Positions 315 to 46,988 of a stretch of 64,000 bases of DNA are shown here, piece after piece. The notes under the pieces were generated by a model. That model was not told the origin of the DNA. It was given only the letters and a program-made list of their open reading frames with translations, and made no database searches. The stretch is taken from the IMG/VR virus record IMGVR_UViG_3300013120_000738, positions 163,726 through 227,725 of that record, one strand, 5' to 3'. Each line of letters starts with the position of its first letter. Within the stretch, counting starts at the first letter, position 1. Position numbers and translations under genes: made by a program.

Positions 315-439
315 TAATTCCCCAATTGGAAATTTTTTGTCACAGTCTCTCTGGGAATTTCCAACTTGGAAATGCGAGTGGGGCCAAGGGTTTCATCGCC
401 CCTTGGCCCCATCCTCGCACGGCGGAGAGACTGTCTCAT

Positions 440-745
440 TTAGCCCCGCATTCGGCATCGATCCGCCATCCAATTGTTTGACGCTGCAGTAGATGTGTTC
501 GACCGTGCCATCGGGGTTTCTGATCGCGATCCGGGGATTTCCTGATTGGAAAACCCTGAAGGTGTGAGTTTGATGCCTTGATGGCCCAATTCTTTGGCCC
601 AATCGCTCAAAGCACGCGGTTGCATGCCTTCTACGGCTCTGGTGGCGGTCTCGACGGTCTCGCCGCGTTGTACGACCAGCTCCAGGACTATCAGCCGTAC
701 AAGTGAACTGTACGTGATGCTGGCGATGAGTGGCTTGTCTGCCAT
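440..745 (-). CDS. Hypothetical protein, 3' part possibly frameshifted or mosaic
   Basis: GGAGG RBS and operator upstream; last 47 nt are identical to 23337-23383. Confidence 0.5.
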   Translation of the reverse strand: MADKPLIASITYSSLVRLIVLELVVQRGETVETATRAVEGMQPRALSDWAKELGHQGIKLTPSGFSNQEIPGSRSETPMARSNTSTAASNNWMADRCRMRG

Positions 746-875
746 GGGGTGAATCCTCCCGGCGATTTCCTAGCAGGAAACGCGTATAAACAGGAGCGGG
801 GTGCCGAGGATGTGGCTGCGAGCCTATGACGCTGCCAGTCGAACCTCGACACCCCGCGAGCGGAGAGACTGATTC

Positions 876-977
876 CTATTGGAGCCACCAGGCTCCCTGC
901 GGGGTCGACGTCAAGATGAACGTGCTGAACGCTGCGGACGCGACCGCGTAGGCCAGTACAACCAAAACAAACCGCAT
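876..977 (-). CDS. 33-aa hydrophobic peptide
   Basis: MRFVLVVLAYAVASAAFSTFIL; downstream of promoter at 1066. Confidence 0.4.
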   Translation of the reverse strand: MRFVLVVLAYAVASAAFSTFILTSTPQGAWWLQ

Positions 978-1101
978 GATCTTTCTCCGCGAAGTGTGTG
1001 AAAAAATGGCCGGGTCGCGACGAGCGACCCGACCGCTCGAAAGGAGATTGACTCGTACACTATCCTGTGACGAACCGATCCACAAGGTGAAATCCGCCAG
1101 A

Positions 1102-1314
1102 TCACCGCATCGAGATGATCTCGCGGACTTGGCCGTACTCCAGGAGTGGTGGCAGCTCGTACGTGCTGCTCGAGGGACGCGGCTGGCAGTGCTGCGTCAG
1201 CTCGTCGTACGATTCCACTCCCAGATAGTAGCGAGCCGCGATGATGCACATTTTGTGCGACCAGTTCGCGTGGACTTCTCGCAGCCGGTGAACCATCTGC
1301 AAAAACGTCTCCAT
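1102..1314 (-). CDS. Hypothetical protein
   Basis: RBS and promoter at 1369. Confidence 0.55.
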   Translation of the reverse strand: METFLQMVHRLREVHANWSHKMCIIAARYYLGVESYDELTQHCQPRPSSSTYELPPLLEYGQVREIISMR

Positions 1315-1569
1315 GTCTCTCCCTCCTCGAAAATAGTCCTCTTGCCGGTTATCTTCCGGCTGTCCGTTTGTGACAGACCGGTCCGAGGAGTGAAACTGGC
1401 TTTGGAGTTCTTGAATGGATATTTTCGGGCTTTGGTCGCATTCAGACCACCGACCGGCAGCGGCCGATTTCACGCGGGGCCACCGGCTTGTCACAGTGGG
1501 GCAGCGGAGAGAGGCGGCGGTGGTCGTCGCCGACCCGCACCACACCACTCTTTTTTCGGAGGTGCAGAC

Positions 1570-1755
1570 ATGCACAAGAAAGCCATCGCAGCCCTGCTCG
1601 AGTCTCTGGTCAAGCGCGTCGTCGCCAAGGCGAACGAGGCGGAGTGCGGCGACGAGCCCGCACTCGAGGAGGCGGAAGCCCGCACTCTCGTGGGGATCTG
1701 GCTCCGCAAGAACGCGGGGAAGGTCGTGAACGAGATCTGCGACGTCGAGGACTGA
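1570..1755 (+). CDS. Small protein MHKKAI..., paralog A
   Basis: GGAGG RBS, promoter 1489; paralog at 4961-5155. Confidence 0.8.
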   Translation: MHKKAIAALLESLVKRVVAKANEAECGDEPALEEAEARTLVGIWLRKNAGKVVNEICDVED

Positions 1756-1836
1756 TTTCACGCGAGTGATCGGTCTGTCACATGGCGTTGGGAGCACGGG
1801 GCTCCCAACGCTCCTTTTGTCTTTGGAGAGACTCAC

Positions 1837-2109
1837 ATGTCGTACGAACCCGACACAAGCCACTTGTCGCACGAGTGGCTCGGCATCGACCAGAAGGCGG
1901 CCGACGAAGGCGAAGCTGAAAAGCGATCCTTCCGATCCGTCACGAAGGTCGGCGAGCGGTACAAGAAACCGCGTGGCAAAAATGGCCGCACCCCGGCAGC
2001 ACGGGCCAAGGCCGAAAAGAAAGAGGCGAAGCTCTCGAAAGAGGCGGAAGCCCTCGCGAGAGAGGCACGGCTCCGCAAGATGATCAACCGCATCTTGTCG
2101 AGCGACTAG
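1837..2109 (+). CDS. Basic hypothetical protein
   Basis: Promoter 1776, leader hairpin, RBS. Confidence 0.7.
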   Translation: MSYEPDTSHLSHEWLGIDQKAADEGEAEKRSFRSVTKVGERYKKPRGKNGRTPAARAKAEKKEAKLSKEAEALAREARLRKMINRILSSD

Positions 2110-2509
2110 GTCTCTCCTCACACCGAGCAGGCCGCTTGGGGTCATCCCTGGGCGGCCTGCTCACTTATGCGCGTCCATTTCCACACAGGAAACGCCCCAA
2201 ATGTGCTACAGGACATAAGTTTCTTGCTGGGCCATATCGAAGAGTTCTTGGCGGTTCTCCAGCTGAATGTGTTGTTCCGAAAATGTTTGAGCGAACCCAG
2301 AACATATCTAGATGTGTTCCTCGAAGGAGCCTAAATCTTCTGTCTGACGCATTCAGAATCTTCAGATATATCCATTCTAGAGGAGAATTTTCCTTGAGTG
2401 GGCATATCTGGCGGTTCTGAACGTGCTTTCACGCTTGTATGGCCGTCTGTAACAGTATTGAAAGGGGAGGACAGGCCTTCCCGCAATTTCCAACCAGGAA
2501 AGGAGTGCT

Positions 2510-2812
2510 ATGAAAAAGCGAATAGTGGAGGTGCTGGCGTGGGACGAGATAAGTATGGTTCACTGTCTCTATCTGGATGCATGCGACGCCAGAATCGTGA
2601 ACGAGGACGACGAAGGCGAGCTGGCTCTGGAGATCAACGCGGATGATGCCACCATCGAGGCCTTCCTGCGGCGTCTCTGGCACGACGACGAGGACGAGCC
2701 GGGCTGGACAGTGGCCAAGATATCTCGCGGAGAGGCCACGATCACCGTAGAGTGGCGGAGCGACCGCAACCACCTCGCCGTGAACACGCTGATGTTTGGG
2801 CCGTACGCCTAG
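2510..2812 (+). CDS. Hypothetical protein
   Basis: Promoter 2448, hairpin, operator 2487 abutting AGGAG RBS. Confidence 0.75.
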   Translation: MKKRIVEVLAWDEISMVHCLYLDACDARIVNEDDEGELALEINADDATIEAFLRRLWHDDEDEPGWTVAKISRGEATITVEWRSDRNHLAVNTLMFGPYA

Positions 2813-2954
2813 AAGTCTCGAATATGCCCACCCAAAAGAATTTATTTCTGTGGGTGGGCTTCTTTGTGGATTTCGGGCGTGCTTTCACGTCCGTCTAGTC
2901 GTCTGTCACACCAGAGGAGTAATCCCCTGAATTTCCAACCAGGAAAGGACGAAC

Positions 2955-3230
2955 ATGAAGACATGGCAGACTGGACAAAGAGTCCGAATCCGTTGCACTG
3001 ATCGCGGCAAAGTAATAGCCCGCGACGAGGATCCCGTTTACTTGATCTGTGGGACTCACTCAACTCGAGGAATGTGGTTGAGCGTCGAGGATGACACATA
3101 TGACGGCTACACGGCCGACGTAATCGTCCACGACGACACAAGCGGCGACGCAGACGACCCCACGTACCGCGTCGTACTGCAGGACAGCCGAGGTTCTCTG
3201 AGCCCCCGCGTCGTTCTGGTCGCGGCTTAA
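2955..3230 (+). CDS. Hypothetical protein (possibly SH3/KOW-like beta protein)
   Basis: Promoter 2904, operator 2932; WQTGQRVRI start. Confidence 0.7.
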   Translation: MKTWQTGQRVRIRCTDRGKVIARDEDPVYLICGTHSTRGMWLSVEDDTYDGYTADVIVHDDTSGDADDPTYRVVLQDSRGSLSPRVVLVAA

Positions 3231-3310
3231 CGCACACACTACCGTTTGTCACACCAGGAGAGAGGGGAGGAAAGACCTCCCCGAATTTCCAACCAGGAAA
3301 GGAATAGCCA

Positions 3311-3652
3311 ATGGCGGAGACAAAATCACTGGAGCTCCCAATCGAGGACTCGTACGTCCCAAGTGCTGGAGAGCTCAACAACTTCGTGTACTTGGTCTGC
3401 AAGTACACAGTCAACTGGGGCATGCGGGCCTGTGACCTGCAAGTCTGTCTGATGATGGCTGGCGGAGCCGAAGAGATCAAAGGCAATGCAGGACTCACCA
3501 AGCTCTGTGAAGTGACCTGCGAGTACTTGTGGGATCACGTCTGCGGTGAGCCCGAGGAACCGACCACCGACCAACTCTTCGACCACATCAAAGAGGGCCT
3601 GCAGGCCTGGTACAAGAACAGCACGCCAGAAGAAAGGGCCGCAACCGAATAA
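3311..3652 (+). CDS. Hypothetical protein
   Basis: Promoter 3247, operator 3286. Confidence 0.75.
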   Translation: MAETKSLELPIEDSYVPSAGELNNFVYLVCKYTVNWGMRACDLQVCLMMAGGAEEIKGNAGLTKLCEVTCEYLWDHVCGEPEEPTTDQLFDHIKEGLQAWYKNSTPEERAATE

Positions 3653-3737
3653 ACGCGGCCGATATTGCTTGTCACACGTCCTTGGGGCGGGGATTATCCT
3701 CGTCCCAAGGATTTCCAAGCAGGAAAGCGAGAGACAG

Positions 3738-3917
3738 ATGATCTTTGTGATCCGAGACAACACCAACGCATGCTTGCTGACCGGCACGCGTGTCGTCGAA
3801 GCCGACGACGAACGAACAGCATGGGAGCACGTCGCCAAATCCTGGCCATTGCCCCCATACAACCAGAGAGACGACTGCGAGTATCAAATTGTCCCCCAAC
3901 CAGTGGAGAAGGCATGA
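3738..3917 (+). CDS. Hypothetical protein
   Basis: Promoter 3670, operator 3712. Confidence 0.65.
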   Translation: MIFVIRDNTNACLLTGTRVVEADDERTAWEHVAKSWPLPPYNQRDDCEYQIVPQPVEKA

Positions 3918-4132
3918 AAGCTGAAACACGACCAGGAATCATTACCAGCAGCCCAGATGACGCCGATTGCTTCGATTGGCTCAGTGATGGCTGGTATCAA
4001 ATATCTATCCGGCACACACCGGAAGCTCAAGCACTCATGGCGAAAGCCAAGAGCTGCATCGAAGATGGCGAGGACGTACCAGACGTGATCAGAAGACTGG
4101 AAGAGGCTGGCTTCGTCGTCTCCCGCCAATAG
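3914..4132 (+). CDS. Hypothetical protein
   Basis: ATGA-coupled to the previous gene. Confidence 0.7.
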   Translation: MKAETRPGIITSSPDDADCFDWLSDGWYQISIRHTPEAQALMAKAKSCIEDGEDVPDVIRRLEEAGFVVSRQ

Positions 4133-4162
4133 TCCCCTAGATTTCCCAGCAGGAAACGCATT

Positions 4163-20318: not shown

Positions 20319-20975
20319 TTAAGACTCCAAGTATTCAGCAGCAGCTCTAAGCCGTTCTGGATTATCACCAAAAAGGCCTATACCACTATTACAATTCGAG
20401 CACAATAAACCACGATATTTGCCAGTTTTATGACAATGATCAATATGAAATGATGGACCAGTCGGTGATTTACAAATCTCACAAGTAGTACCCACCATTT
20501 CAGCTATTTCGAGGGCTTTTTCATTCGGCACACCCATTTTCTTACAACGACGAAGGATATGCTGTCGCTTATGAGCGGCACCAGTACAGTGCTTACAAGT
20601 AGATCTTCTACCATCATAACTATACTTGCTCTTCCAAAAATCCGTTAATGGTAGCTGACATTTACATTTGGTACAAACACGCTTACCATCTGAAAGAGTA
20701 ATCGCATGCCGGTGGCACTTTATACAAATAGAAGCTTTAGATGATTTCCGACCACCACATTGCGGACAAACATCCCTACCAGTACGAAGTTTTATATCAG
20801 TGCATTTTCTACATTGCTTCGCACGTTTGCTCTTACGAGCACCACAAGAGCATAAATCATACCGATTAGCTTGTGTTTGTGCTTTAGTTAATTGTTGTTC
20901 AACCTTCCTACAACCACCACACTGTTTGGCACGTCTATCCTTTTGCTTACCACACTTTGGGCATTTGTCTTTCAT
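20319..20975 (-). mobile_element. Endonuclease VII-family homing-type nuclease with repeated Zn knuckles
   Basis: CEICK...HIDHCHKTGKYRGLLCSNCNSGIG...DNP..L..AAEYL; repeated CxxCG..K....K.C..C. Confidence 0.88.
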
Positions 20976-22543
20976 TTGAAGCACCAATTAAATCGAGAAA
21001 CATTTGCTAGTACACAACCCATGACTTCTGTATATTTACCAGCAAATCTCTCATCATGCCAAGACATCCCCAACCCATGAACAAACTCATGTGCAGCAAC
21101 AGCAATAAGTTGTTTCTTCCCCTCCGACTTAAAATTCCACCGCTTCTTGAAGGACTTCGAGTAGCTGGCGTTCTGCTCAACCACCTTGCACGGGTTCAAG
21201 TAATAGACTCTCCCATAATCGCCCCGCTCATGCTGAGCAGCATCATCTTCGCTGAAAAGGAATCCTATGGAGAATTCATCCTCGACATCGAACAACCGAT
21301 GCATCTCCAGCATTATCCGACCCCAAAACCGGGCCAACTTAGTACTGTGGCTGGAGAACTCACCACTGCCCGGATCATAGTAAGCCGGAACCTTCAAATC
21401 CGTCTCATTCTTAAGGACGAACTGATGCCCCAGGGTAGCAACCTGCCGACGCGGTACCGGCCGCACCTCATCCGAATAAGCAGCCGCTCTGACCGGTCGG
21501 TCAGTCTCCGCCACCAAGTGGTATAGAGGATCCTGCGGTTCGTCCCCATCGACCACATCAATTCCATCCTGTGGCGACTCGACGATAGTAGGGGCAATTT
21601 GATCCTTCTCGACCCCATTAGGATACCCAGGATGCTCCCGTACTGGCTCCGGCGGAGCAACCGGCTCTGCCACCAGGTCCACTACATCCAAAGTCCGCTG
21701 ATGGCAAAGCTTCGTCCCATGGTACTCCTTATACCGAGGACCACGCCGACGATCCTTCAAAGCCGAGGACTTATCAACCGCCAGCTCCGTCACAAAATCC
21801 GAGAGCTCATTGCGGTACGGATTTACCAGCCCGTCGCGGTTCGCCGTTAGTACGTCATTACTCGCACCTTTCAGCTCAACGATAACCGTCCTATCGAACC
21901 CAGTCGACTGGACGAACATCGGAATCCCCCCAATCCTGACACACAGACGGTATTTTTTCGACCGGTTGGTCCAAACCTTACCGAAACCCAGGTCTCTTCG
22001 AGGACTACCTTTTCGGTAGGAAGTATCCAGGGTATTCCCGTCTACTTCGAGGGTACCGCTCCATTGAGCCCAGAAGGCGAACTTGCCGAAATTCTGGCGT
22101 AATTCCTCCTGCTGATCACCCTTCATGATCACGTCCGAACGCGTACCATGAAAATAGGTCTCTTCTCGCAGATCGTAATCGCCGCCACAGCCATCCGCAA
22201 CCCACGACCCAGAATGGATCTTCCAAGACTTGTGGGTAAAATAGAGAAGCTCTTTAGCTTTACCGAACCCCCCGACAGTGTGGTCAAAGTCCTTACCGGA
22301 CTCACCCAGGGCTAAGAGTTTGTCGCAAAGCTCCTCGCGGCTCATGGGGGCACCGTTATTCTCGACGGTAACCCAAGTATCTCCCTCAGGAGTCAGGCCG
22401 ATCTTGACCTGAATGTACATGCAACCGGGAGCATCCGTACAATTCTGGAGAATCTCCCGAACCCAAGCCCAGGTCGGATCCTCATAGTCGTTGGGGACCT
22501 TAGCAAAGAAAGAAGGCCCGATACGTACCTGATGCTGTGCCAT
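20972..22543 (-). CDS. GHKL (HATPase_c-like) ATPase with C-terminal HExxH motif
   Basis: REILQN, VENNG, ALGESGK, GGFGKAK; VAAHEFVHGLGMSWHDERF. Confidence 0.8.
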   Translation of the reverse strand: MAQHQVRIGPSFFAKVPNDYEDPTWAWVREILQNCTDAPGCMYIQVKIGLTPEGDTWVTVENNGAPMSREELCDKLLALGESGKDFDHTVGGFGKAKELLYFTHKSWKIHSGSWVADGCGGDYDLREETYFHGTRSDVIMKGDQQEELRQNFGKFAFWAQWSGTLEVDGNTLDTSYRKGSPRRDLGFGKVWTNRSKKYRLCVRIGGIPMFVQSTGFDRTVIVELKGASNDVLTANRDGLVNPYRNELSDFVTELAVDKSSALKDRRRGPRYKEYHGTKLCHQRTLDVVDLVAEPVAPPEPVREHPGYPNGVEKDQIAPTIVESPQDGIDVVDGDEPQDPLYHLVAETDRPVRAAAYSDEVRPVPRRQVATLGHQFVLKNETDLKVPAYYDPGSGEFSSHSTKLARFWGRIMLEMHRLFDVEDEFSIGFLFSEDDAAQHERGDYGRVYYLNPCKVVEQNASYSKSFKKRWNFKSEGKKQLIAVAAHEFVHGLGMSWHDERFAGKYTEVMGCVLANVSRFNWCFK

Positions 22544-22615
22544 CGTCGATATCTCCTGTGCTGAAGAATATACTTCCGATGACCCCATGTGACGAACCCA
22601 CCGCCAGAGGGTAAA

Positions 22616-24607: not shown

Positions 24608-25075
24608 ATGAAAACTTGTGAAAGATGCGAACAACCACAACCTATTACACACTTCAAATTACATAGAGGTAAAAGAGGAAATATATGTCGAAAATGTAGA
24701 AATAATGCAGCAAAAGCTAAAAATCGTTGCCCCCATTGCTACAAACCATTAGAAAATAATAGATGCCAACATTGTGGTAAACGTCACAAACAACGATATC
24801 AAGAAATAAAGAAAATAGTAATTGAACATTATGGTGGTAAGTGCCAATGCCCAGGATGCCAAGAAGATCGATTACCATTCCTTACTATAGATCATAAAAA
24901 TGGAGACGGAGCAGAACACCGCAGAAAAATCCCAGCAGCGAGAAAAAGAATTTACGCCTGGCTCCTAAAAGAAAACTTCCCAGACGATTTCCAAATATTA
25001 TGTTGGAACTGTAATTGTGCGAAATCTACTGATGGGCATTGCCCAGTACATACGCAAACAGCCCCACCCAAATAG
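24608..25075 (+). mobile_element. HNH endonuclease
   Basis: YGGKCQCPGC...FLTIDHKNGDG...FQILCWNCN; AT-rich, antisense. Confidence 0.85.
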
Positions 25076-25895: not shown

Positions 25896-26189
25896 CTACT
25901 CGTCCCCCTCCGCAGGTGGTGAAGCCTCCCGCATCTTCTTATCAATAACCGACTCGGTCGGCGTAACAGGAACAGACGGACCCATCTTCCCAGTACTAGG
26001 ACCCTTCACCATCGGCCCAGTCCTCTCCGGAGATTCGATACCTACCTTCTTAAAAATAGCATCCAACCTCCTACACAGAACATCAGCCGCCTCACGATGA
26101 TGAAAATTAATAGCTTCCATCTGAGCCGTCGAATCCGCGTCCAAATACATCCCCTTCAGCTCATCAATAACAACCTCAAACTGAGACAT
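25896..26189 (-). CDS. Hypothetical protein
   Basis: AGGAGG RBS. Confidence 0.6.
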   Translation of the reverse strand: MSQFEVVIDELKGMYLDADSTAQMEAINFHHREAADVLCRRLDAIFKKVGIESPERTGPMVKGPSTGKMGPSVPVTPTESVIDKKMREASPPAEGDE

Positions 26190-26198
26190 AATGTCCTC

Positions 26199-26498
26199 CT
26201 AAATTTGTTCATCCCAATCCCAATAGCCACCCTTCGCACCACAAACCTCATCACGCGAAGGAGTCTCAACCCGGCAACTAATAACATTATTCGTAGTCGA
26301 AGCCCTAATCTCCTCCGAACCCCCACCCTCCAAAGACTCCACAAGCTCCCCAACAGTCCTGGCCCCAACCGACGCCGCCATCTGCTGAAGAACCTCCTTA
26401 TCTTCATACCAATCATCCATATCCGCCTTAATAGCCCTAAACTCCCCCTCACGCTTCCTCACATGGATCTCCGGGTGATAAGCAACTATCTTTCCCAT
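26199..26498 (-). CDS. Hypothetical protein
   Basis: G/T-skewed codons. Confidence 0.6.
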   Translation of the reverse strand: MGKIVAYHPEIHVRKREGEFRAIKADMDDWYEDKEVLQQMAASVGARTVGELVESLEGGGSEEIRASTTNNVISCRVETPSRDEVCGAKGGYWDWDEQI

Positions 26499-26571
26499 TT
26501 AACCAGCCCCCTAGTCTTGGTAACACACGAGGAATAGGAATATCCCCGACACGTATTTAAAGGACAAGAGC

Positions 26572-27291
26572 ATGAACACCACAACAGTACCAGTCGATCG
26601 CTACATCTGGCCACCACGCCCCGACGCGGCCATCCCCAGGGACGAAACAGACTTCCTGAAGGGCTCGACCTGGATCGCACAACTGAAATACAACGACAGT
26701 CGCTGTCTAGTAAAATATTTACCCGACAACACCGTCGAACTCTGGAACCGACACGGCGAAAAATTCAGATCATACACATGCCCAGACTGGCTAGCCGAAC
26801 AACTCCTCGAAGTACGATTCCTACTCGGCCTAGCCCCAAACGAATACCACCTACTCGACGGAGGACTACTCGACGCCAAACACAGGGCAATCAAAGACAC
26901 CATCGTGGTCTGGGATGTACTCGTCGACTCCGGCATGTACCAAGTCGGCACCACCTACCGCGACCGGTACGAAAAGTACTTCGGTGCCCACACCCGACAA
27001 AGACCATTCTGGAACTTCAGCCACCAGGACTACGAAAAATCCCACACCTTCGGATTCGCCCTCACCAAGAACACATTCTTCCCATCCAACCACAAACACC
27101 AAACCTGGGACGAACTATGGGAACGAGTCCACGCCGTCAACAAACCCTGGCTAAACATGGGCGTCGGCCCCCTACTCGAAGGCCTCGTCTTCAAAGACCT
27201 CAGCGGCAAACTCAAAAGAGCCTACCGCGAGAAAAACAACCAACACTGGGTTATGCGATCCCGCGTAGCCACCGGACGACACGCATTCTAA
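26572..27291 (+). CDS. ATP-dependent ligase-type adenylation domain (atypical, no OB-fold)
   Basis: QLKYNDSR (motif I), LLDGGL, VWDVL, EGLVFK. Confidence 0.75.
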   Translation: MNTTTVPVDRYIWPPRPDAAIPRDETDFLKGSTWIAQLKYNDSRCLVKYLPDNTVELWNRHGEKFRSYTCPDWLAEQLLEVRFLLGLAPNEYHLLDGGLLDAKHRAIKDTIVVWDVLVDSGMYQVGTTYRDRYEKYFGAHTRQRPFWNFSHQDYEKSHTFGFALTKNTFFPSNHKHQTWDELWERVHAVNKPWLNMGVGPLLEGLVFKDLSGKLKRAYREKNNQHWVMRSRVATGRHAF

Positions 27292-27333
27292 CTCCCCACA
27301 GTCGGGGAACCACCAAATAAGGAAACCCTGACT

Positions 27334-27804
27334 ATGGAACGAATCCTCATCAAAACAGTCCCCACGGGCCGCATCGAAATAACCATCGACGGCCCAACCC
27401 CCCTTATCCAATTCAACTGCGACTGCCTAGACGCCCGCCCCATCTGCCAAGCAATCTGCTGCCGCAACCGCCCCGACTACGCATGCGCCATAGACAACCC
27501 AGAAGACCTAGAAACCTTCAAAGACTGCCTAATCCCACACCCATTCGTCCCACAAGTCAAACTATTACCCCACCACGGCGGCCACTGCCTATTCCTAGAC
27601 GAAGACTCCAAATGTTCCATACACGACCACAAACCAACCATCTGTACCCGCTGGCACTGCAGCCCCGAAGGCGGAACCGCCGAAATCCGCGACAAAGGCT
27701 TCAGCCTCATCCCAGCCCTCGGCGATCTCCAACATGATTGGATAGAAAAAACTTATCCCGAAGCACCTAAACCCTCACCCCGCCCTCAGGGGACCACCGA
27801 ATAA
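27334..27804 (+). CDS. YkgJ/CxxCxxCC cysteine-cluster protein
   Basis: ICQAICC, CLFLDEDSKCSIHDHKPTICTRW. Confidence 0.8.
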   Translation: MERILIKTVPTGRIEITIDGPTPLIQFNCDCLDARPICQAICCRNRPDYACAIDNPEDLETFKDCLIPHPFVPQVKLLPHHGGHCLFLDEDSKCSIHDHKPTICTRWHCSPEGGTAEIRDKGFSLIPALGDLQHDWIEKTYPEAPKPSPRPQGTTE

Positions 27805-27872
27805 GGAAACATTGAGTATGTAAGCTCAATGTATTTAAGGATCCCACTAAAATTTCCCATAAGGAAAGCATC

Positions 27873-28283
27873 ATGGACAAAGAACAAGCCCAACTAAGCT
27901 GGTCACGAGCCAACAAACTCGCAGAACTCGCCGGAATCGCCCCACCGGCCGCCAGAAACTACATCTCAACCCTCAAAAAAGACACCGAAGAGGGCTGGAG
28001 ACAACTCACAACACTCCTCGACGGCGACAAGGACGCTCGAAACGGAATCATCCGAAACCACATCGACCTCGCCAAAGCCCACAAGACCCCACAAAGGGCT
28101 TCCAAGGGCGACCCCACACGCTCCCCACGGGCCGGAGCCCCCGCCGAATCCTCAAACGGTACCGAAGGAACCGCCGGGGTCGACATCAACCTCCTCCGAG
28201 CCCTAAAGAAACTCCTCACCAAGGGCTACGCACTCGAAGACATCCAAACAGGCTGCAAGTTCATCCAAGAACTACGCTCATAA
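27873..28283 (+). CDS. Hypothetical protein
   Basis: ATAAGGAAA leader like its neighbours. Confidence 0.65.
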   Translation: MDKEQAQLSWSRANKLAELAGIAPPAARNYISTLKKDTEEGWRQLTTLLDGDKDARNGIIRNHIDLAKAHKTPQRASKGDPTRSPRAGAPAESSNGTEGTAGVDINLLRALKKLLTKGYALEDIQTGCKFIQELRS

Positions 28284-28320
28284 GCACGCCCTAGTCCTCG
28301 ACCGCACCAGAAACATAGAA

Positions 28321-28610
28321 CGACCCCCGACCATTTCCACGGAGGAAATCGTACGGGGGCTCCTCTTATATCCGAACGTAATCTTACGCGTTCGCATAAG
28401 TCCTCATAAGGCCTTGAGGACTTTCTAGACGCCCGCTCGATTTCCTCCGTGGAAATAACCCCCCTTTACCGGGTGGCGGGCTTCACATATATCTCCGAGC
28501 TTCTCCTTTAGCTTCCCTTGAATTCTACGCGCGTGAAGGGCCGGAAGTCCTAGAGAGTGCTTGCGGGTCAGAAAGATATCTTCCGTGGCCTCGGAGATAT
28601 ATCCGGTCTT
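28321..28610. other. Putative replication origin or genome-end junction with nested inverted repeats
   Basis: 19-bp perfect IR 28333-28351/28438-28456; 13-bp perfect IR 28487-28499/28590-28602; strand skew inverts here. Confidence 0.6.
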
Positions 28611-28704
28611 GTTGGTGTTTTGGAGATTCGGGTATTTTATTTCTCTGTTAGTATAGTTATTGGTCTTTGTGGTGGGTTTCTTGGGGTGATTTCCCCTTTG
28701 GGAA

Positions 28705-29165
28705 TTATTTGGGCCAGCCGGTGTGGTTTCTGAACCAGTGGGTGAGTTTTTGGATGCTTTGGGGGTCGTTGAGGTCGCATTGGTAGCAGATTGTTGGGCG
28801 GTCTGCTGGTTGGATTGTGAGGGTTGTACCTTGGATTTTTATTTTGTGGCTTGGGGCGTGGCAGCAGGTGGCGGGTTTGTCGTAGGTCCAGCGGTGTGAG
28901 CCGTCTGGTCCTTGGTAGTAGTGGATGTGGAGGTGGGTTATTTGGGTTTGGAGTTCTTGTCTTATGGCTTCTATTGTTGGGTTTTTGGGGTTTGTGGGGG
29001 TTAGGAGGATTTGGTCTGTGATGTTGAATGCTTGTAGGTGTTTGAGGATTTGTTGTGGTGTGTAGGTTTTGTGAGGGTTTTGCCTGTGGGGAGTTGTGCT
29101 GTGTAGGTTTTGTTGGGGTTTGTGAGTTTTTGGAGGTTTTTTATGGTTGCTTTGATTTTGGTCAT
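28705..29165 (-). pseudogene. DLxDP-family protein, frameshifted (missed by ORF track)
   Basis: MTKIKATIK... joins the -1 frame KTYTPQQILKHL...CYQCDLNDPQSIQKLTHWF near 29070. Confidence 0.6.
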
Positions 29166-29199
29166 GATTTGTGTTTATGTCGTGGAGTTCTGGGATCCA

Positions 29200-29493
29200 T
29201 TAGTTTTCGAGTTGGTCTAGGAGGTCTGTGAGGTTGTCGGGTGTGGCTCCTATCCATTCTGTGGCTGTGGTGATGGCGTTTTGGATTCCTTCGGTGATTT
29301 TTTGCATTTTTTGGACGTAGTCGTGGAGTTGGTTGTAGGCTGAGAGGCCGTGTTGGGCGACGTGTCTTGGGTCTGTAGGGATTGTTTTTTTGAGGGTTTG
29401 GTAGAGGTGTCCGAGGTATTTGCAGAGGAGGCAGTAGTTTATTGCTTTTGCTATTTGGGTGTAATAACTCGAAAAACCTTCGCAAGAATTCAC
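29200..29493 (-). CDS. Hypothetical protein
   Basis: GTGA-coupled. Confidence 0.6.
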   Translation of the reverse strand: MNSCEGFSSYYTQIAKAINYCLLCKYLGHLYQTLKKTIPTDPRHVAQHGLSAYNQLHDYVQKMQKITEGIQNAITTATEWIGATPDNLTDLLDQLEN

Positions 29494-35751: not shown

Positions 35752-36046
35752 TTTCTTCTTCCTCTCTACGTCTTCGACGTCGCTTAACCTTCTCGATCCC
35801 ATCGGCAATAGCGGCCCACAGAAACACACCGCCAAGCCCAAGAACAAAACCTACCGGAATCTCAAAGACCACACAGAGCAACTTCTGCCAGAACGTAGCT
35901 GGACCAAAAGCCCACCAAATCCCGTAGATGGCACCACACCACAATGTGATCACAAAGATCGCAGAAATGATTGGTCCACCAATCACATTCAGCACAGTAT
36001 TGAAAAGAGCACTTTCTGCTCGATCAAGCAGTGTTCGCCGCCGCAT
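35744..36046 (-). CDS. Two-TM membrane protein
   Basis: Two hydrophobic stretches, basic C-tail. Confidence 0.65.
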   Translation of the reverse strand: MRRRTLLDRAESALFNTVLNVIGGPIISAIFVITLWCGAIYGIWWAFGPATFWQKLLCVVFEIPVGFVLGLGGVFLWAAIADGIEKVKRRRRRREEEENA

Positions 36047-37013
36047 TTTTTAGACCTTCCTCGAAAAATTGTACATGATTAAAGTGCTCGAAACCGAGCC
36101 GATTAGCCCAAGTCCGATCTTTTGTCTGATCACCAACATAAATGCACTGGTCGGGATCAAGAAAGTACTTGCGAATGAAGTAAACGCCCATTCCACTTTG
36201 AGGCTTCACACAATAACACGAGTCCCCAGGCGGTAAATGTGGGCAATACTGTAACTCATCCACGGTGACACCGAGCTGCTTGTGTGTCTCATCGAAGCAC
36301 GCTTTGGCTTGTTCTCTCGACAAAACTCCCTTCGAAACACCTGACTGATTCGACGCCCCCAAGAGAAGATAACCCTGATCCCGATAATATTGCATGACTT
36401 TACCGCGACCAGGAATAACAGAGACTTCACTTGGTTGGCACGGATACTTGCCGTTGCCGCCATTGGTGAATCTAAGAGTGCCATCATAATCGAAGATAAC
36501 AGCCTTGTTGCAGAATGCCGTTCCAAGGGGATTTCTCTTGAACTTGATCTTCTCGATCTTGGCGTAACCCTCGGCCATTGTGGGCTTCTCAAACTGCTTG
36601 CGGTACAGGAATAACACCGCTGGCGGGAAGATGTTTGGGTCATTCTTGGCTTGCGGGTGATCCGCGATCTCATTAGCAGTCCTGAAGACGCACTCATAAC
36701 GATCCCACATCCGGTGGAGTGCGTTGATTTGACAATCCTCGATTTTGATGTCCATCAAGACGCATTTGACCGGCACACCATGTTGTTTGGCGAGGTCGAT
36801 GAACGGTTGCCGCATGCCATTGGTCGGAAAGGTATTGTCGAGAACTACGCTCTCACCCTTAGCGAGACACCTACCGACTGCTGGTAGTAAATCCATGACC
36901 TTGCCGCTTACAAGATCTCGGCTGACGTGTCGATAGCCTCGGTCGATGTAAGTTTTGGAGATACCTGTTTTGCCGGAGGCTTGTGGCCCCACCAACATTA
37001 TCACTTCTTGCAT
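36024..37013 (-). CDS. Polynucleotide kinase/3'-phosphatase-like (P-loop kinase + HAD IIIA)
   Basis: GPQASGKT, VSRD, VVLDNT; IFDYDGTL, ASNQSGV, CPH...C.C.KP..GM, YVGD. Confidence 0.88.
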   Translation of the reverse strand: MQEVIMLVGPQASGKTGISKTYIDRGYRHVSRDLVSGKVMDLLPAVGRCLAKGESVVLDNTFPTNGMRQPFIDLAKQHGVPVKCVLMDIKIEDCQINALHRMWDRYECVFRTANEIADHPQAKNDPNIFPPAVLFLYRKQFEKPTMAEGYAKIEKIKFKRNPLGTAFCNKAVIFDYDGTLRFTNGGNGKYPCQPSEVSVIPGRGKVMQYYRDQGYLLLGASNQSGVSKGVLSREQAKACFDETHKQLGVTVDELQYCPHLPPGDSCYCVKPQSGMGVYFIRKYFLDPDQCIYVGDQTKDRTWANRLGFEHFNHVQFFEEGLKNAAANTA

Positions 37014-45989: not shown

Positions 45990-46988
45990 TTATTCGGTAA
46001 ATCCTTTTGGATTTTTTCTATGCCACTCCCAGGCCGATTCAATTATTGGTATAATTCCTGTGTATTTTGGCTGCCAACCTAATACAGAACAAGCAAATGA
46101 TGAATCAGCCACCAAAACTGGCGGGTCGCCATCTCGACGAACCTCAATAGTATGGGGAATTTCTCGACCAGCCACAAACTGACATGTTTCGATTATCTCT
46201 TTAACAGTAGTTCCTTGCCCAGTACCAAGATTCAAAGCCAACGACGTATTAGGCTGTAACTTTCTCAAAGCTGCGACATGGGCAGAGGCTAGATCATCAA
46301 CATGAATGTAATCCCTTATGCAAGTTCCGTCGCGGGTCTGATAATTGTCTCCATATATGAAAACACGAGGCCTTTGATCAAGAGCTACCTGTAAAACTAG
46401 AGGGATCAAATGCGTTTCGGGTTCATGATCTTCACCAAGTTCACCTGAAGCACCGGCAGCATTAAAATACCGTAGAATAATATAACTGAACCCATATGCT
46501 CTTGCGTAATGATCTATTGCCCGTTCCATAAAAAGCTTCGTATATCCATAAGGATTCACCGGCACTTGCTCTTCTTTTTCGGTGATAGGTATACTCTTCG
46601 GGATGCCGTAAGTTGCACAACTACTAGAAAAGATTATTTGGTTTACTCCAACCTCCCGCATCGCTCCTAGAAGGCTTAGAGTTCCTGCAACATTGTTCTC
46701 ATAGTATTTCTCTGGGTCCTTAACAGATTCCTCGACATATGCTAAAGCAGCGAAATGCATTACTGCATCGATCTTTTTATCCTTGAGTGTTGATACTAAG
46801 AGTCTAGTATTCCTCAGATCACCGACTACAAGTTGCCAACGCAACAACTTTGATGACCGATAGACCGCTTCACTATGACCTCTCACCAAATTGTCATACA
46901 CCCAGACGTTATAACCTCGCCGAACTAACTCACGAGCAGCGAATGAACCCACATAACCGGCTCCACCAGTGACCAAAATATTATCCAT
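45990..46988 (-). CDS. galE: UDP-glucose 4-epimerase
   Basis: TGGAGYVGS, HFAA, SSSCATYG, PYGYTK, LRYFNAAGA, EDHEPETHLIP. Confidence 0.93.
   Translation of the reverse strand: MDNILVTGGAGYVGSFAARELVRRGYNVWVYDNLVRGHSEAVYRSSKLLRWQLVVGDLRNTRLLVSTLKDKKIDAVMHFAALAYVEESVKDPEKYYENNVAGTLSLLGAMREVGVNQIIFSSSCATYGIPKSIPITEKEEQVPVNPYGYTKLFMERAIDHYARAYGFSYIILRYFNAAGASGELGEDHEPETHLIPLVLQVALDQRPRVFIYGDNYQTRDGTCIRDYIHVDDLASAHVAALRKLQPNTSLALNLGTGQGTTVKEIIETCQFVAGREIPHTIEVRRDGDPPVLVADSSFACSVLGWQPKYTGIIPIIESAWEWHRKNPKGFTE

Follow-up and report, generated by a model that had tools for sequence, protein, structure and literature searches.

Mirror-image strand skew around a conserved site in a group of uncultured huge phages

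Strand asymmetry of base composition is a common signature of replication, and a switch of GC or keto skew marks the origins of many bacteria, plasmids and viruses (reviewed in PMC3269016). At such Lobry-type switches the sign of the skew changes at one point, the strand running away from that point is rich in G and T, and the effect is independent of gene direction. A second form of asymmetry is found in vertebrate mitochondria, where a GT-rich heavy strand is paired with an AC-rich light strand, with strong effects at third codon positions, on codon and amino-acid use, and in a gradient along the genome (PMC1794132, PMC3269014); this asymmetry is genome-wide, of one polarity, and attributed to deamination of a long-exposed single strand. 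GC-skewed R-loop zones occur downstream of CpG-island promoters and in class-switch regions (PMC3787257). R-loops also prime replication at the T4 origins oriF and oriG, in T7 and in ColE1. Finally, strand-biased orientation of single motifs can serve as anti-restriction, as for the CAGCAG sites of T7 and EcoP15I.

Here we describe a locus in a group of uncultured huge phages in which a conserved DNA element is flanked for 1-6 kb on each side by DNA whose strands are almost sorted into G/T and A/C at silent sites, in mirror image, a pattern that was not found described in the papers searched. It shares the switch, the polarity and the independence from gene direction with replication origins, but third positions are about 90% one class, against a few to about 20% normally, the arms span 1-6 kb rather than whole replichores, there is no genome-scale inversion in the window, genes converge on the site, and keto/amino class behaves as conserved at silent sites. 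With the mitochondrial asymmetry it shares the two-letter sorting, of similar strength at third codon positions, the reshaping of codon and amino-acid use, and the gradation with position, but it is local and mirrored, lies in a dsDNA phage of at least 340 kb, and shows no excess of transitions. As in R-loop zones, the G-rich strand (the non-template strand in those zones) runs outward from a central element on both sides over kilobases; however, T-richness is not needed for R-loops, no outward promoters have been demonstrated, and the annotated genes run inward. As in the T7 case, strand asymmetry removes palindromic or inverted sites from a stretch of phage DNA, but here this is wholesale base sorting in a few kb around one site, with mirror polarity, rather than single motifs across a genome.

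The skewed arms and their genes

The window analysed is a stretch of 64,000 nucleotides from IMG/VR record IMGVR_UViG_3300013120_000738 (positions 163,726 to 227,725). The first-pass annotation of this sequence had noted a plus strand rich in C and A regardless of gene direction that turns rich in G and T between about 28.3 and 28.6 kb, and this observation is confirmed. In 300-nt windows the keto skew (G+T-A-C) is -0.25 to -0.37 from 25.9 to 28.4 kb and +0.38 to +0.66 from 28.5 to 29.5 kb, while the rest of the window has a mean of -0.036 and a standard deviation of 0.087, so that the arms lie about 4 and about 8 standard deviations out; the cumulative minimum, where the sign changes, is at 28,464. 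The features of the locus are as follows.

25896-28330, no strand: left arm, plus strand C/A-rich (A.30, C.355, G.18, T.16), with genes on both strands
25896-26189, minus: 97-aa gene with an AGGAGG ribosome-binding site and a G/T-rich coding strand (third positions 91% G/T)
26199-26498, minus: 99-aa gene with a G/T-rich coding strand; it has an ortholog in the relative L013 (749-1006)
26572-27291, plus: small ATP-dependent ligase-like protein (239 aa, K-x-N-D-x-R motif; phrog_114, 3.7e-6; 201 homologs, some with PF01068), third positions 86% A/C; the synteny anchor for all related loci
27334-27804, plus: CxxCxxCC (PF03692-like) metal-binding protein, third positions 90% A/C
27873-28283, plus: 136-aa protein, helix-turn-helix-like (a lead only), the last gene before the core
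28333-28456, no strand: nested inverted repeat with outer arms of 25 nt, each containing an ATTTCC-N5-GGAAAT palindrome, and two inner hairpins at 28369-28398 and 28398-28423
28476-28608, plus: conserved single-copy block at the point where the skew changes sign, with a core motif ..TCCTTTAGCTTCCCTTGAATTCT.. at 28504-28526, bracketed in this genome by a 13-bp perfect inverted repeat (28487-28499 / 28590-28602)
28560-29465, no strand: right arm, plus strand G/T-rich (A.125, C.11, G.36, T.40 over 28560-29480)
28705-29199, minus: open frame of 164 codons with no ATG, GTG or TTG start, continuing the frame of the upstream gene across a TAA stop; its composition is P/T/N/K/Q/H-rich because the skew also reaches codon positions 1 and 2
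29200-29493, minus: 97-aa gene whose coding strand is A/C-rich from codon 11 onward, its first 10 codons being unskewed

That the skew might merely follow the coding strand had been named in advance as an outcome that would overturn the observation, and computing it by codon position shows that it does not. Third positions are 91% G/T in the minus-strand genes 25896-26498, 86-90% A/C in the plus-strand genes 26572-28283, and about 90% A/C on the coding strand of the minus-strand genes 28705-29493, whereas positions 1 and 2 are near normal in the intact genes. The skew is therefore strand-specific rather than coding-strand-specific and, as the annotation had claimed, it does reshape codon use. 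Most genes in the arms of this window do have an A/C-rich coding strand, but across the clade both orientations are common in the left arm, with the A/C-rich strand coding in 237 windows and the G/T-rich strand in 192 (45%), which refutes transcription-coupled asymmetry of the annotated genes.

The left border of the skew lies at about 25,890, in an intergenic gap, and the right border at about 29,465, where the skew ends abruptly about 10 codons inside gene 29200-29493 and GC content drops from about 0.53 to about 0.44. No terminal repeats or target duplication were found at these two positions, and insertion of a mobile element was rejected. A foreign origin of the module was rejected as well, because relatives share it and the newcomer genes are the less skewed ones: HNH or zinc-finger-like genes inserted inside the L013 arm are much less skewed than their neighbours. 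The frame 28705-29199 shares a weak DLNDP motif with L013 gene 6406-6738, and erosion of its start codon was suspected from this comparison, but the homology is too weak to claim it; a scan for stop-codon recoding was uninformative. A promoter-like TTTACC..N17..TATATC is present, as the annotation had pointed out for a TTTACC-containing element in the switch region, but was not picked up by a consensus scan. An Rfam search reported only the tRNA.

A conserved block at the switch

An assembly join had likewise been put forward as a condition that would refute the observation, and comparison with independent assemblies excludes it; an assembly or sequencing artefact is likewise refuted. The locus is 99.9% identical in at least 5 independent assemblies, with 99.93-100% identity over up to 12.7 kb in four other JGI assemblies, and the protein is carried on 12 contigs of up to 340 kb. 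Nor is the pattern a peculiarity of this genome: most of about 80 related metagenome contigs from lakes, sea, sediment and soil, up to 310 kb long and drawn from JGI, ENA, Tara and Logan data, show the same mirror switch 1-7 kb downstream of the ligase-like gene, over ligase divergence down to about 42-45% identity. The same polarity holds in about 20 related loci that carry both arms. A profile anchored on the conserved block jumps from -0.27 to +0.36..+0.49 across the block and decays to about 0 by about 3-5 kb on either side, while in the window third-position skew has a tail out to about 14 kb on the left. One marine lineage keeps the ligase and the block but has no skew. Beyond these relatives, a DNA search of known phages with 25.8-29.6 kb found nothing, a protein search with the ligase found only 23-26% identical genes in five uncultured phages of 0.6-0.7 Mb, of which the two examined (LR745206 and LR756501) showed no skew, and GTDB genomes hold no relative of the ligase and thus no prophage or host clue.

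The switch coincides with an apparently non-coding block of about 130 nt (28476-28608) that is single-copy in the window and always has the same orientation relative to the ligase. RNAalifold finds no consensus pairs on either strand. An R-x-x-R-N-A-K-E-G-P-S-like reading suggested the C-terminus of a minus-strand protein, which was rejected as the sole explanation since the stop-to-stop frames are only 31-162 codons, many lack a start codon, and lineages differ by 1-nt indels; a plus-strand mini-ORF reading (..AFLCVP..) is not conserved either, and the window has a stop there.

The inverted repeats singled out by the annotation are real but fare less well. The 25-nt repeat (28333-28357 / 28432-28456) is 92% complementary, its perfect core being the 19-bp repeat noted earlier, and the 28320-28470 stretch that holds the nested repeat folds with z = -8.0 against shuffles. 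However, the equivalent 150 nt in 15 relatives fold no better than shuffles, so that the nested repeat was rejected as the conserved origin structure, and no conserved inverted terminal repeat or hairpin-forming palindrome marks the junction. The two 'operators' within it are copies of a generic intergenic palindrome found 19 times in the window, mostly just upstream of gene starts, and are not origin-specific.

Possible readings: replication origin, joined ends or selected strands

The annotation had inferred a bidirectional origin or a junction of two termini with end-initiated replication, and this interpretation is partly supported. In our best reading, which we hold only tentatively, the locus is a conserved cis-acting site of a clade of uncultured huge phages, most likely a replication-initiation zone from which DNA synthesis diverges, with the block and the nearby small palindromes as its core. 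What the analysis demonstrates is the skew and its independence from gene direction, its conservation across the clade, its anchoring on the block, its decay with distance, the weaker skew of recently inserted genes, and a substitution pattern at equilibrium in which keto/amino class is conserved; that the polar process is replication is our inference. The polarity, with the strand running 5'->3' away from the core rich in G/T and its partner in A/C, is that of leading-strand and lagging-template asymmetry at a bidirectional origin, here taken to near saturation at silent sites. In this view fork direction near the core would always be outward, so that a strand-asymmetric substitution bias present everywhere cannot average out as it does elsewhere; alternatively, composition may be selected because these strands work as single strands at initiation. 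DNA-metabolism genes (ligase, SNF2-type helicase, GHKL ATPase, endonuclease) lie within 10 kb on the left.

Other observations speak against an origin. Genes converge on the core, which would be head-on to forks leaving it, and class-changing transversions are suppressed as well as transitions, which a purely transition-based replication bias does not predict. The marine lineage mentioned above keeps the ligase and the block but has no skew. Cumulative skew, proposed beforehand as a check, was computed over the 64-kb window but not over the whole genome, and GC skew stays negative on both flanks with the cumulative curve falling on both sides, so that there is no genome-scale inversion within +/-30 kb. 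No strongly AT-rich stretch stands out in 200-nt windows, and no initiator gene was identified. As for an initiator site, the unique conserved block is present, but no iteron array specific to the core or DnaA boxes are evident, and the evidence on this point tips neither way. Sequencing reads were not examined, so that neither initiation nor physical termini were measured and origin and joined ends were not separated.

Joined genome ends are a less likely alternative. Here the core would be, or contain, the terminal repeat or packaging site of a linear genome, synthesis primed at each end would displace the 5'-ended strand for a few kb, and the two arms would be the genome ends, joined in assemblies through terminal redundancy or concatemers. 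The polarity is the same as for an origin, since the 5'-ended strands at the junction are G/T-rich; the left flank is GC-richer than the right in every long locus, as expected where a late module meets an early module; and genes run towards the junction from both sides. The HTH-like gene abutting the core holds a position compatible with a small-terminase-like role, again a lead only. Of 19 contigs that reach the block, 12 stop 85-551 nt beyond it, against 2 of 7 in the next 2 kb, but the stops are scattered rather than aligned, differ between assemblies of the same phage (+910, +1299 and +1581 in loci L036, L037 and L039) and lie in extreme G/T-rich DNA, which points to assembly fragility. 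No terminal-protein or protein-primed polymerase gene was seen in the window, although the search was not exhaustive. Furthermore, resection to 3' tails, the usual fate of phage ends, predicts the opposite polarity, and at least 5 assemblies of this phage and 7 other lineages read straight through the core.

The simple mechanism offered at first, that exposed single strands become G/T-rich by deamination, predicts excess transitions and is not supported. The direction of the bias, amino to keto by both C->T and A->G, has the same form as the mitochondrial asymmetry, as do the sorting and its gradation, and an AID/APOBEC-like or adenosine deaminase-like activity of host or phage, or unusually long ssDNA exposure, could be imagined. 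However, at silent sites of close relatives the transition flux in the arms is 0.46 times that of the flanks (p = 1e-4), which fits a polarity-locked asymmetry (predicted 0.32) or a fixation bias giving 91% saturation (predicted 0.45), but not add-on hypermutation (predicted 1.83). The ratio of transitions to class-preserving G<->T changes is 1.27 versus 5.19 in the flanks (p = 6e-14), and that of class-changing transversions (A<->T / C<->G) to class-preserving changes 0.29 versus 0.83 (p = 2e-4), such that class-changing substitutions are 3-4 times rarer relative to G<->T changes than in the flanks. Divergence in the arms equals that of the flanks in the pair of related loci L048/L052, dinucleotide observed/expected ratios lie between 0.71 and 1.32 with no TC or WRC signature (TC 1.04, GC 0.95, CC 1.32), and codon positions 1 and 2 and the reading frames are preserved in the left arm. 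Ongoing hypermutation is thus disfavoured and very unlikely, and the pattern is actively maintained.

The same substitution pattern, the lack of a mutational context signature and the conservation of the skew across the clade speak for a more novel reading, doubtful at present but not excluded, in which the arms are a selected functional device rather than a mutational scar. Weak purifying selection on keto/amino class at every silent site would maintain several kb around a unique control element, whether or not it is an origin, in a two-letter code per strand. Neither strand of such arms can form Watson-Crick hairpins or contain palindromic (restriction) sites, inward transcripts are C-rich, G-poor and unstructured and hence Rho-prone, and outward transcripts are G-rich and hence R-loop-prone; the benefit would be structure-free, palindrome-free strands, or polar RNA properties, for a single-strand step of initiation, packaging or defence evasion. 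Against this, no known process requires a mirror polarity of this kind, the gradual decay and the tolerance of unskewed inserted genes look more like a by-product than a design, a polarity-locked mutational asymmetry gives similar flux predictions, and one lineage manages without the skew.

Whichever reading is correct, the arms are a natural test case for separating mutation bias from selection on base composition, with saturation at the mitochondrial level but in dsDNA, on a kb scale, and with the flanks as an internal control in the same genome. The skew also shows how composition pressure can push proteins toward P/T/N/K/Q/H-rich, low-complexity sequence. It defeats gene callers, as a real CxxCxxCC gene was missed and antisense ORFs were called, and it may break assemblies, so this region is probably mis-annotated or missing in many viral contigs. 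If the core is an origin or a terminus, the switch gives a sequence-only marker for a key cis site in a large, uncultured clade of huge phages whose replication and packaging are otherwise unknown.

Provenance and strand-specific composition of the locus

The sequence under study is the last 64 kb of the IMG/VR contig IMGVR_UViG_3300013120_000738 (227,725 bp) and derives from an uncultured huge phage. The ligase-like protein encoded at 26572-27291 is carried on 12 contigs, the longest of which is 340,278 bp. A neighbouring gene on the minus strand (20972-22588) encodes a 523-538-aa protein without any Pfam or PHROG hit, but its language-model features match viral GHKL-ATPase clusters (HATPase_c_3) at 0.98-0.99. 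These clusters are about 90% viral, and genes of similar size (about 500 aa) at the syntenic position in two related loci, L011 and L012, may be its counterparts. A DNA-level search of the GenBank phage collection found nothing similar, and GTDB genomes hold no relative.

The strand skew described in the first-pass annotation is confirmed. In 300-nt windows (G+T-A-C)/N runs at -0.25 to -0.37 from 25.9 to 28.4 kb and at +0.38 to +0.66 from 28.5 to 29.5 kb, compared to -0.036 +/- 0.087 in the rest of the window, and the cumulative minimum is located at 28,464. The skew is of the keto/amino and not the purine/pyrimidine type, since G and T rise together. The features of the locus that bear on its interpretation are the following:

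25896-26498, minus strand: two genes, both with good ribosome-binding sites; third codon positions 91% G/T
26572-28283, plus strand: three genes including the ligase-like gene; third codon positions 86-90% A/C
28333-28456: nested inverted repeat
28476-28608: conserved block of about 130 nt
28705-29493, minus strand: genes with third codon positions about 90% A/C on the coding strand

A skew that merely followed the coding strand had been named in advance as grounds for dismissing the observation, but the comparison of genes in both orientations shows that it belongs to the DNA strand, not to the mRNA. Codon positions 1 and 2 stay near normal in the left arm, whereas in the right arm they shift as well and give rise to P/T/N/K/Q/H-rich proteins. 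Here a 164-codon open frame (28705-29199, minus strand) without an ATG, GTG or TTG start follows gene 29200-29493 in the same frame across a TAA stop, and a 54-aa ATG ORF (29001-29165, minus strand) overlaps it in another frame. This may reflect read-through, a non-canonical start or gene decay; start codons require T and G, which this coding strand lacks. The extreme skew also misleads gene prediction. In the loci L006-L008, at the position equivalent to 27334-27804, the JGI gene caller missed the 156-aa CxxCxxCC gene and called a 46-aa antisense ORF instead, and in the related locus L013 V/G-rich antisense ORFs were called in the G/T-rich arm. A 46-nt direct repeat (27294-27339 and 27778-27823, 78% identical) covers the intergenic leader and ribosome-binding site upstream of 27334 and recurs after that gene's stop, where it is followed only by ATG-TAA and a hairpin.

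An unsupported assembly join was the other objection raised beforehand, and the locus is not an artefact of this kind: four further JGI assemblies from other samples carry the same 10-12.7 kb at 99.93-99.97% identity, one short contig matches at 100%, and only a handful of SNPs fall in or near the arms.

Conservation of the skew and the element at the switch

The mirror skew is a clade-wide feature. Ligase homologues with 56-62% identity reside in syntenic loci (L010-L013) with the same C/A-rich stretch and, where the contig is long enough, an abrupt change to +0.5..+0.69. A ligase-anchored scan of metagenome contigs returned 80 loci from lakes, sea water, sediments and soils. Of the 77 loci of at least 1.5 kb that were scored (these plus loci retrieved earlier), 58 have a 500-nt window beyond -0.3 or +0.35, and about 20 contain both arms with the switch 1-7 kb downstream of the ligase. 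The arms are 1-6 kb long, and a profile anchored on the conserved block steps from -0.27 to +0.36..+0.49 and decays to about 0 by 3-5 kb, while in the window itself the third-position skew shows a weaker tail to about 14 kb on the left. A classifier validated on the window's genes finds both gene orientations in the left arm across the clade (237 versus 192 windows), but mostly minus-strand genes in the right arm (115 versus 29). Genes that look like recent insertions, namely HNH or zinc-finger-like ORFs in L013, are much less skewed than their neighbours. One marine lineage (L025, L029, L033, L042 and L071) retains the ligase, and L025, L029 and L033 also carry the block, yet it has no skew; more distant ligase carriers lack it as well. 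Our literature searches found nothing describing kb-scale, near-saturated keto/amino arms in phages, although absence from the literature searched is not proof of novelty.

The block at 28476-28608 is conserved at the nucleotide level, always has the same orientation relative to the ligase, was detected in 24 loci and occurs once in the window. Read on the minus strand it can be translated into a basic C-terminal peptide, but the frames containing it are only 31-162 codons from stop to stop, many have no start codon, and lineages differ by 1-nt indels inside the block. No consensus RNA structure was found on either strand, and we therefore treat the block as a DNA-level cis element of unknown ligand.

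The inverted repeats and hairpins listed in the first-pass annotation are present, and the stretch containing the nested repeat at 28333-28456 folds far better than shuffled sequences (z = -8.0), but this large repeat is lineage-specific. Its arms are two copies of the palindrome ATTTCC-N5-GGAAAT, which with one mismatch allowed occurs 19 times in the window against 0.25 expected (e.g. at 357, 6366, 12270, 23658, 24208, 27852, 28333, 28440 and 37038, with a cluster at 317-4157). Most copies lie in short intergenic gaps a few bases upstream of start codons, where GGAAA, in the 3' half, doubles as the ribosome-binding site. The palindrome also recurs in many related phages, variants such as GGAATAATTCC lie near the switch in other lineages, and it is a candidate translational or transcriptional control hairpin, or an operator.

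In every long locus the left flank is GC-richer than the right, and genes converge on the core. In the window the GC content drops, at about 29,465, from about 0.52-0.54 left of the switch to about 0.44 on its right, and the same difference is seen in the long related loci L054, L056, L065, L073 and L096; the switch therefore marks a boundary between two compositional domains of the genome. The GC-rich left side includes a run of minus-strand genes interrupted on the opposite strand by an HNH/endonuclease VII-like gene (24608-25075, plus strand; GC 0.38) that looks like a homing-endonuclease insertion. The GC-poor right domain carries four minus-strand genes (36024-37013, 45990-46988, 48162-49142 and 57414-58418) comprising a polynucleotide kinase/phosphatase, two nucleotide-sugar epimerase paralogues and a methyltransferase-like gene, and the kinase together with the ligase-like gene would make an end-healing and end-sealing pair. 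The only tRNA in the window (54902-54976, minus strand) has the anticodon TCA, which reads UGA; ARAGORN labels it SeC and Rfam scores it as tRNA at 63.9 bits. This suppressor-type tRNA hints at stop-codon reassignment in part of this phage, and a crude ORF-length scan with TGA, TAG or TAA read as sense was uninformative in this respect.

Substitution patterns in the arms

In order to distinguish mutation from maintenance, we compared close pairs of loci (85.5-99.8% identical) at third-codon-like sites oriented to the G/T-rich strand. In the flanks, transitions, class-preserving transversions (G<->T, A<->C) and class-changing transversions (A<->T, C<->G) occur at 280 : 54 : 45, whereas in the arms they occur at 153 : 120 : 35. 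The ratio of transitions to class-preserving changes falls from 5.19 to 1.27 (p = 6e-14), and that of class-changing transversions to class-preserving changes from 0.83 to 0.29 (p = 2e-4). The analysis rests on a few hundred events and on phase-inferred third positions in the arms. In the one pair with ample data on both sides (loci L048 and L052), transitions per silent site in the arms are 0.46x those in the flanks (p = 1e-4), while overall divergence is the same.

For 91% saturation, a two-state model predicts a relative flux of 1.83 if an extra amino-to-keto mutation pressure is added, 0.45 for a fixation bias, and 0.32 if a ubiquitous 10:1 strand asymmetry simply has its polarity fixed in the arms and randomised elsewhere. 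The data exclude the first model and do not cleanly separate the other two, but the suppression of A<->T and C<->G changes leans towards a class-based fixation bias. No dinucleotide context signature of a deaminase is present, and ongoing hypermutation is disfavoured by these tests. A directly selected two-letter composition fits the substitution data best; such strands would be structure-free and palindrome-free, or would give polar RNA properties. No demonstrated mechanism exists for it, however, and we consider this reading doubtful, though more likely than joined genome ends.

Interpretation of the polarity

The first-pass annotation had proposed a bidirectional origin or a junction of two genome termini with end-initiated replication, and this interpretation is supported in part. 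The polarity is that of DNA synthesis diverging from the core, and it is wrong for a replication terminus, for 3'-tailed resected ends and for transcription of the annotated genes; transcription coupling and artefact are effectively excluded. Joined genome ends with end-primed strand displacement share the polarity and gain some support from the compositional domain boundary and from the fact that 12 of 19 contigs that reach the block (L011, L027, L029-L031, L033, L043, L049, L060, L064, L068 and L075) stop 85-551 nt beyond it, usually inside extreme G/T-rich sequence. This is an assembly-fragile zone, caused by coverage loss, strain variation or real ends. Yet the stops are scattered, assemblies of the same phage end at different points, and many assemblies cross the site, and we regard joined ends as unlikely. 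Read-end pile-ups, coverage gradients and variant spectra were not examined here.

The skew, its conservation and its substitution pattern are results of the analysis, while replication as the underlying process is inferred. Several observations speak against an initiation zone: genes converge on the core, no genome-scale inversion is seen within the 64 kb of the genome that were analysed, no strongly AT-rich stretch stands out in 200-nt composition windows, no iteron array specific to the core was seen, and one lineage lacks the skew. A bidirectional initiation zone nevertheless best ties together the unique conserved element, the mirror symmetry, the decay with distance and the polarity-locked substitution pattern, and it is our preferred, if tentative, reading of this site in the phage genome.
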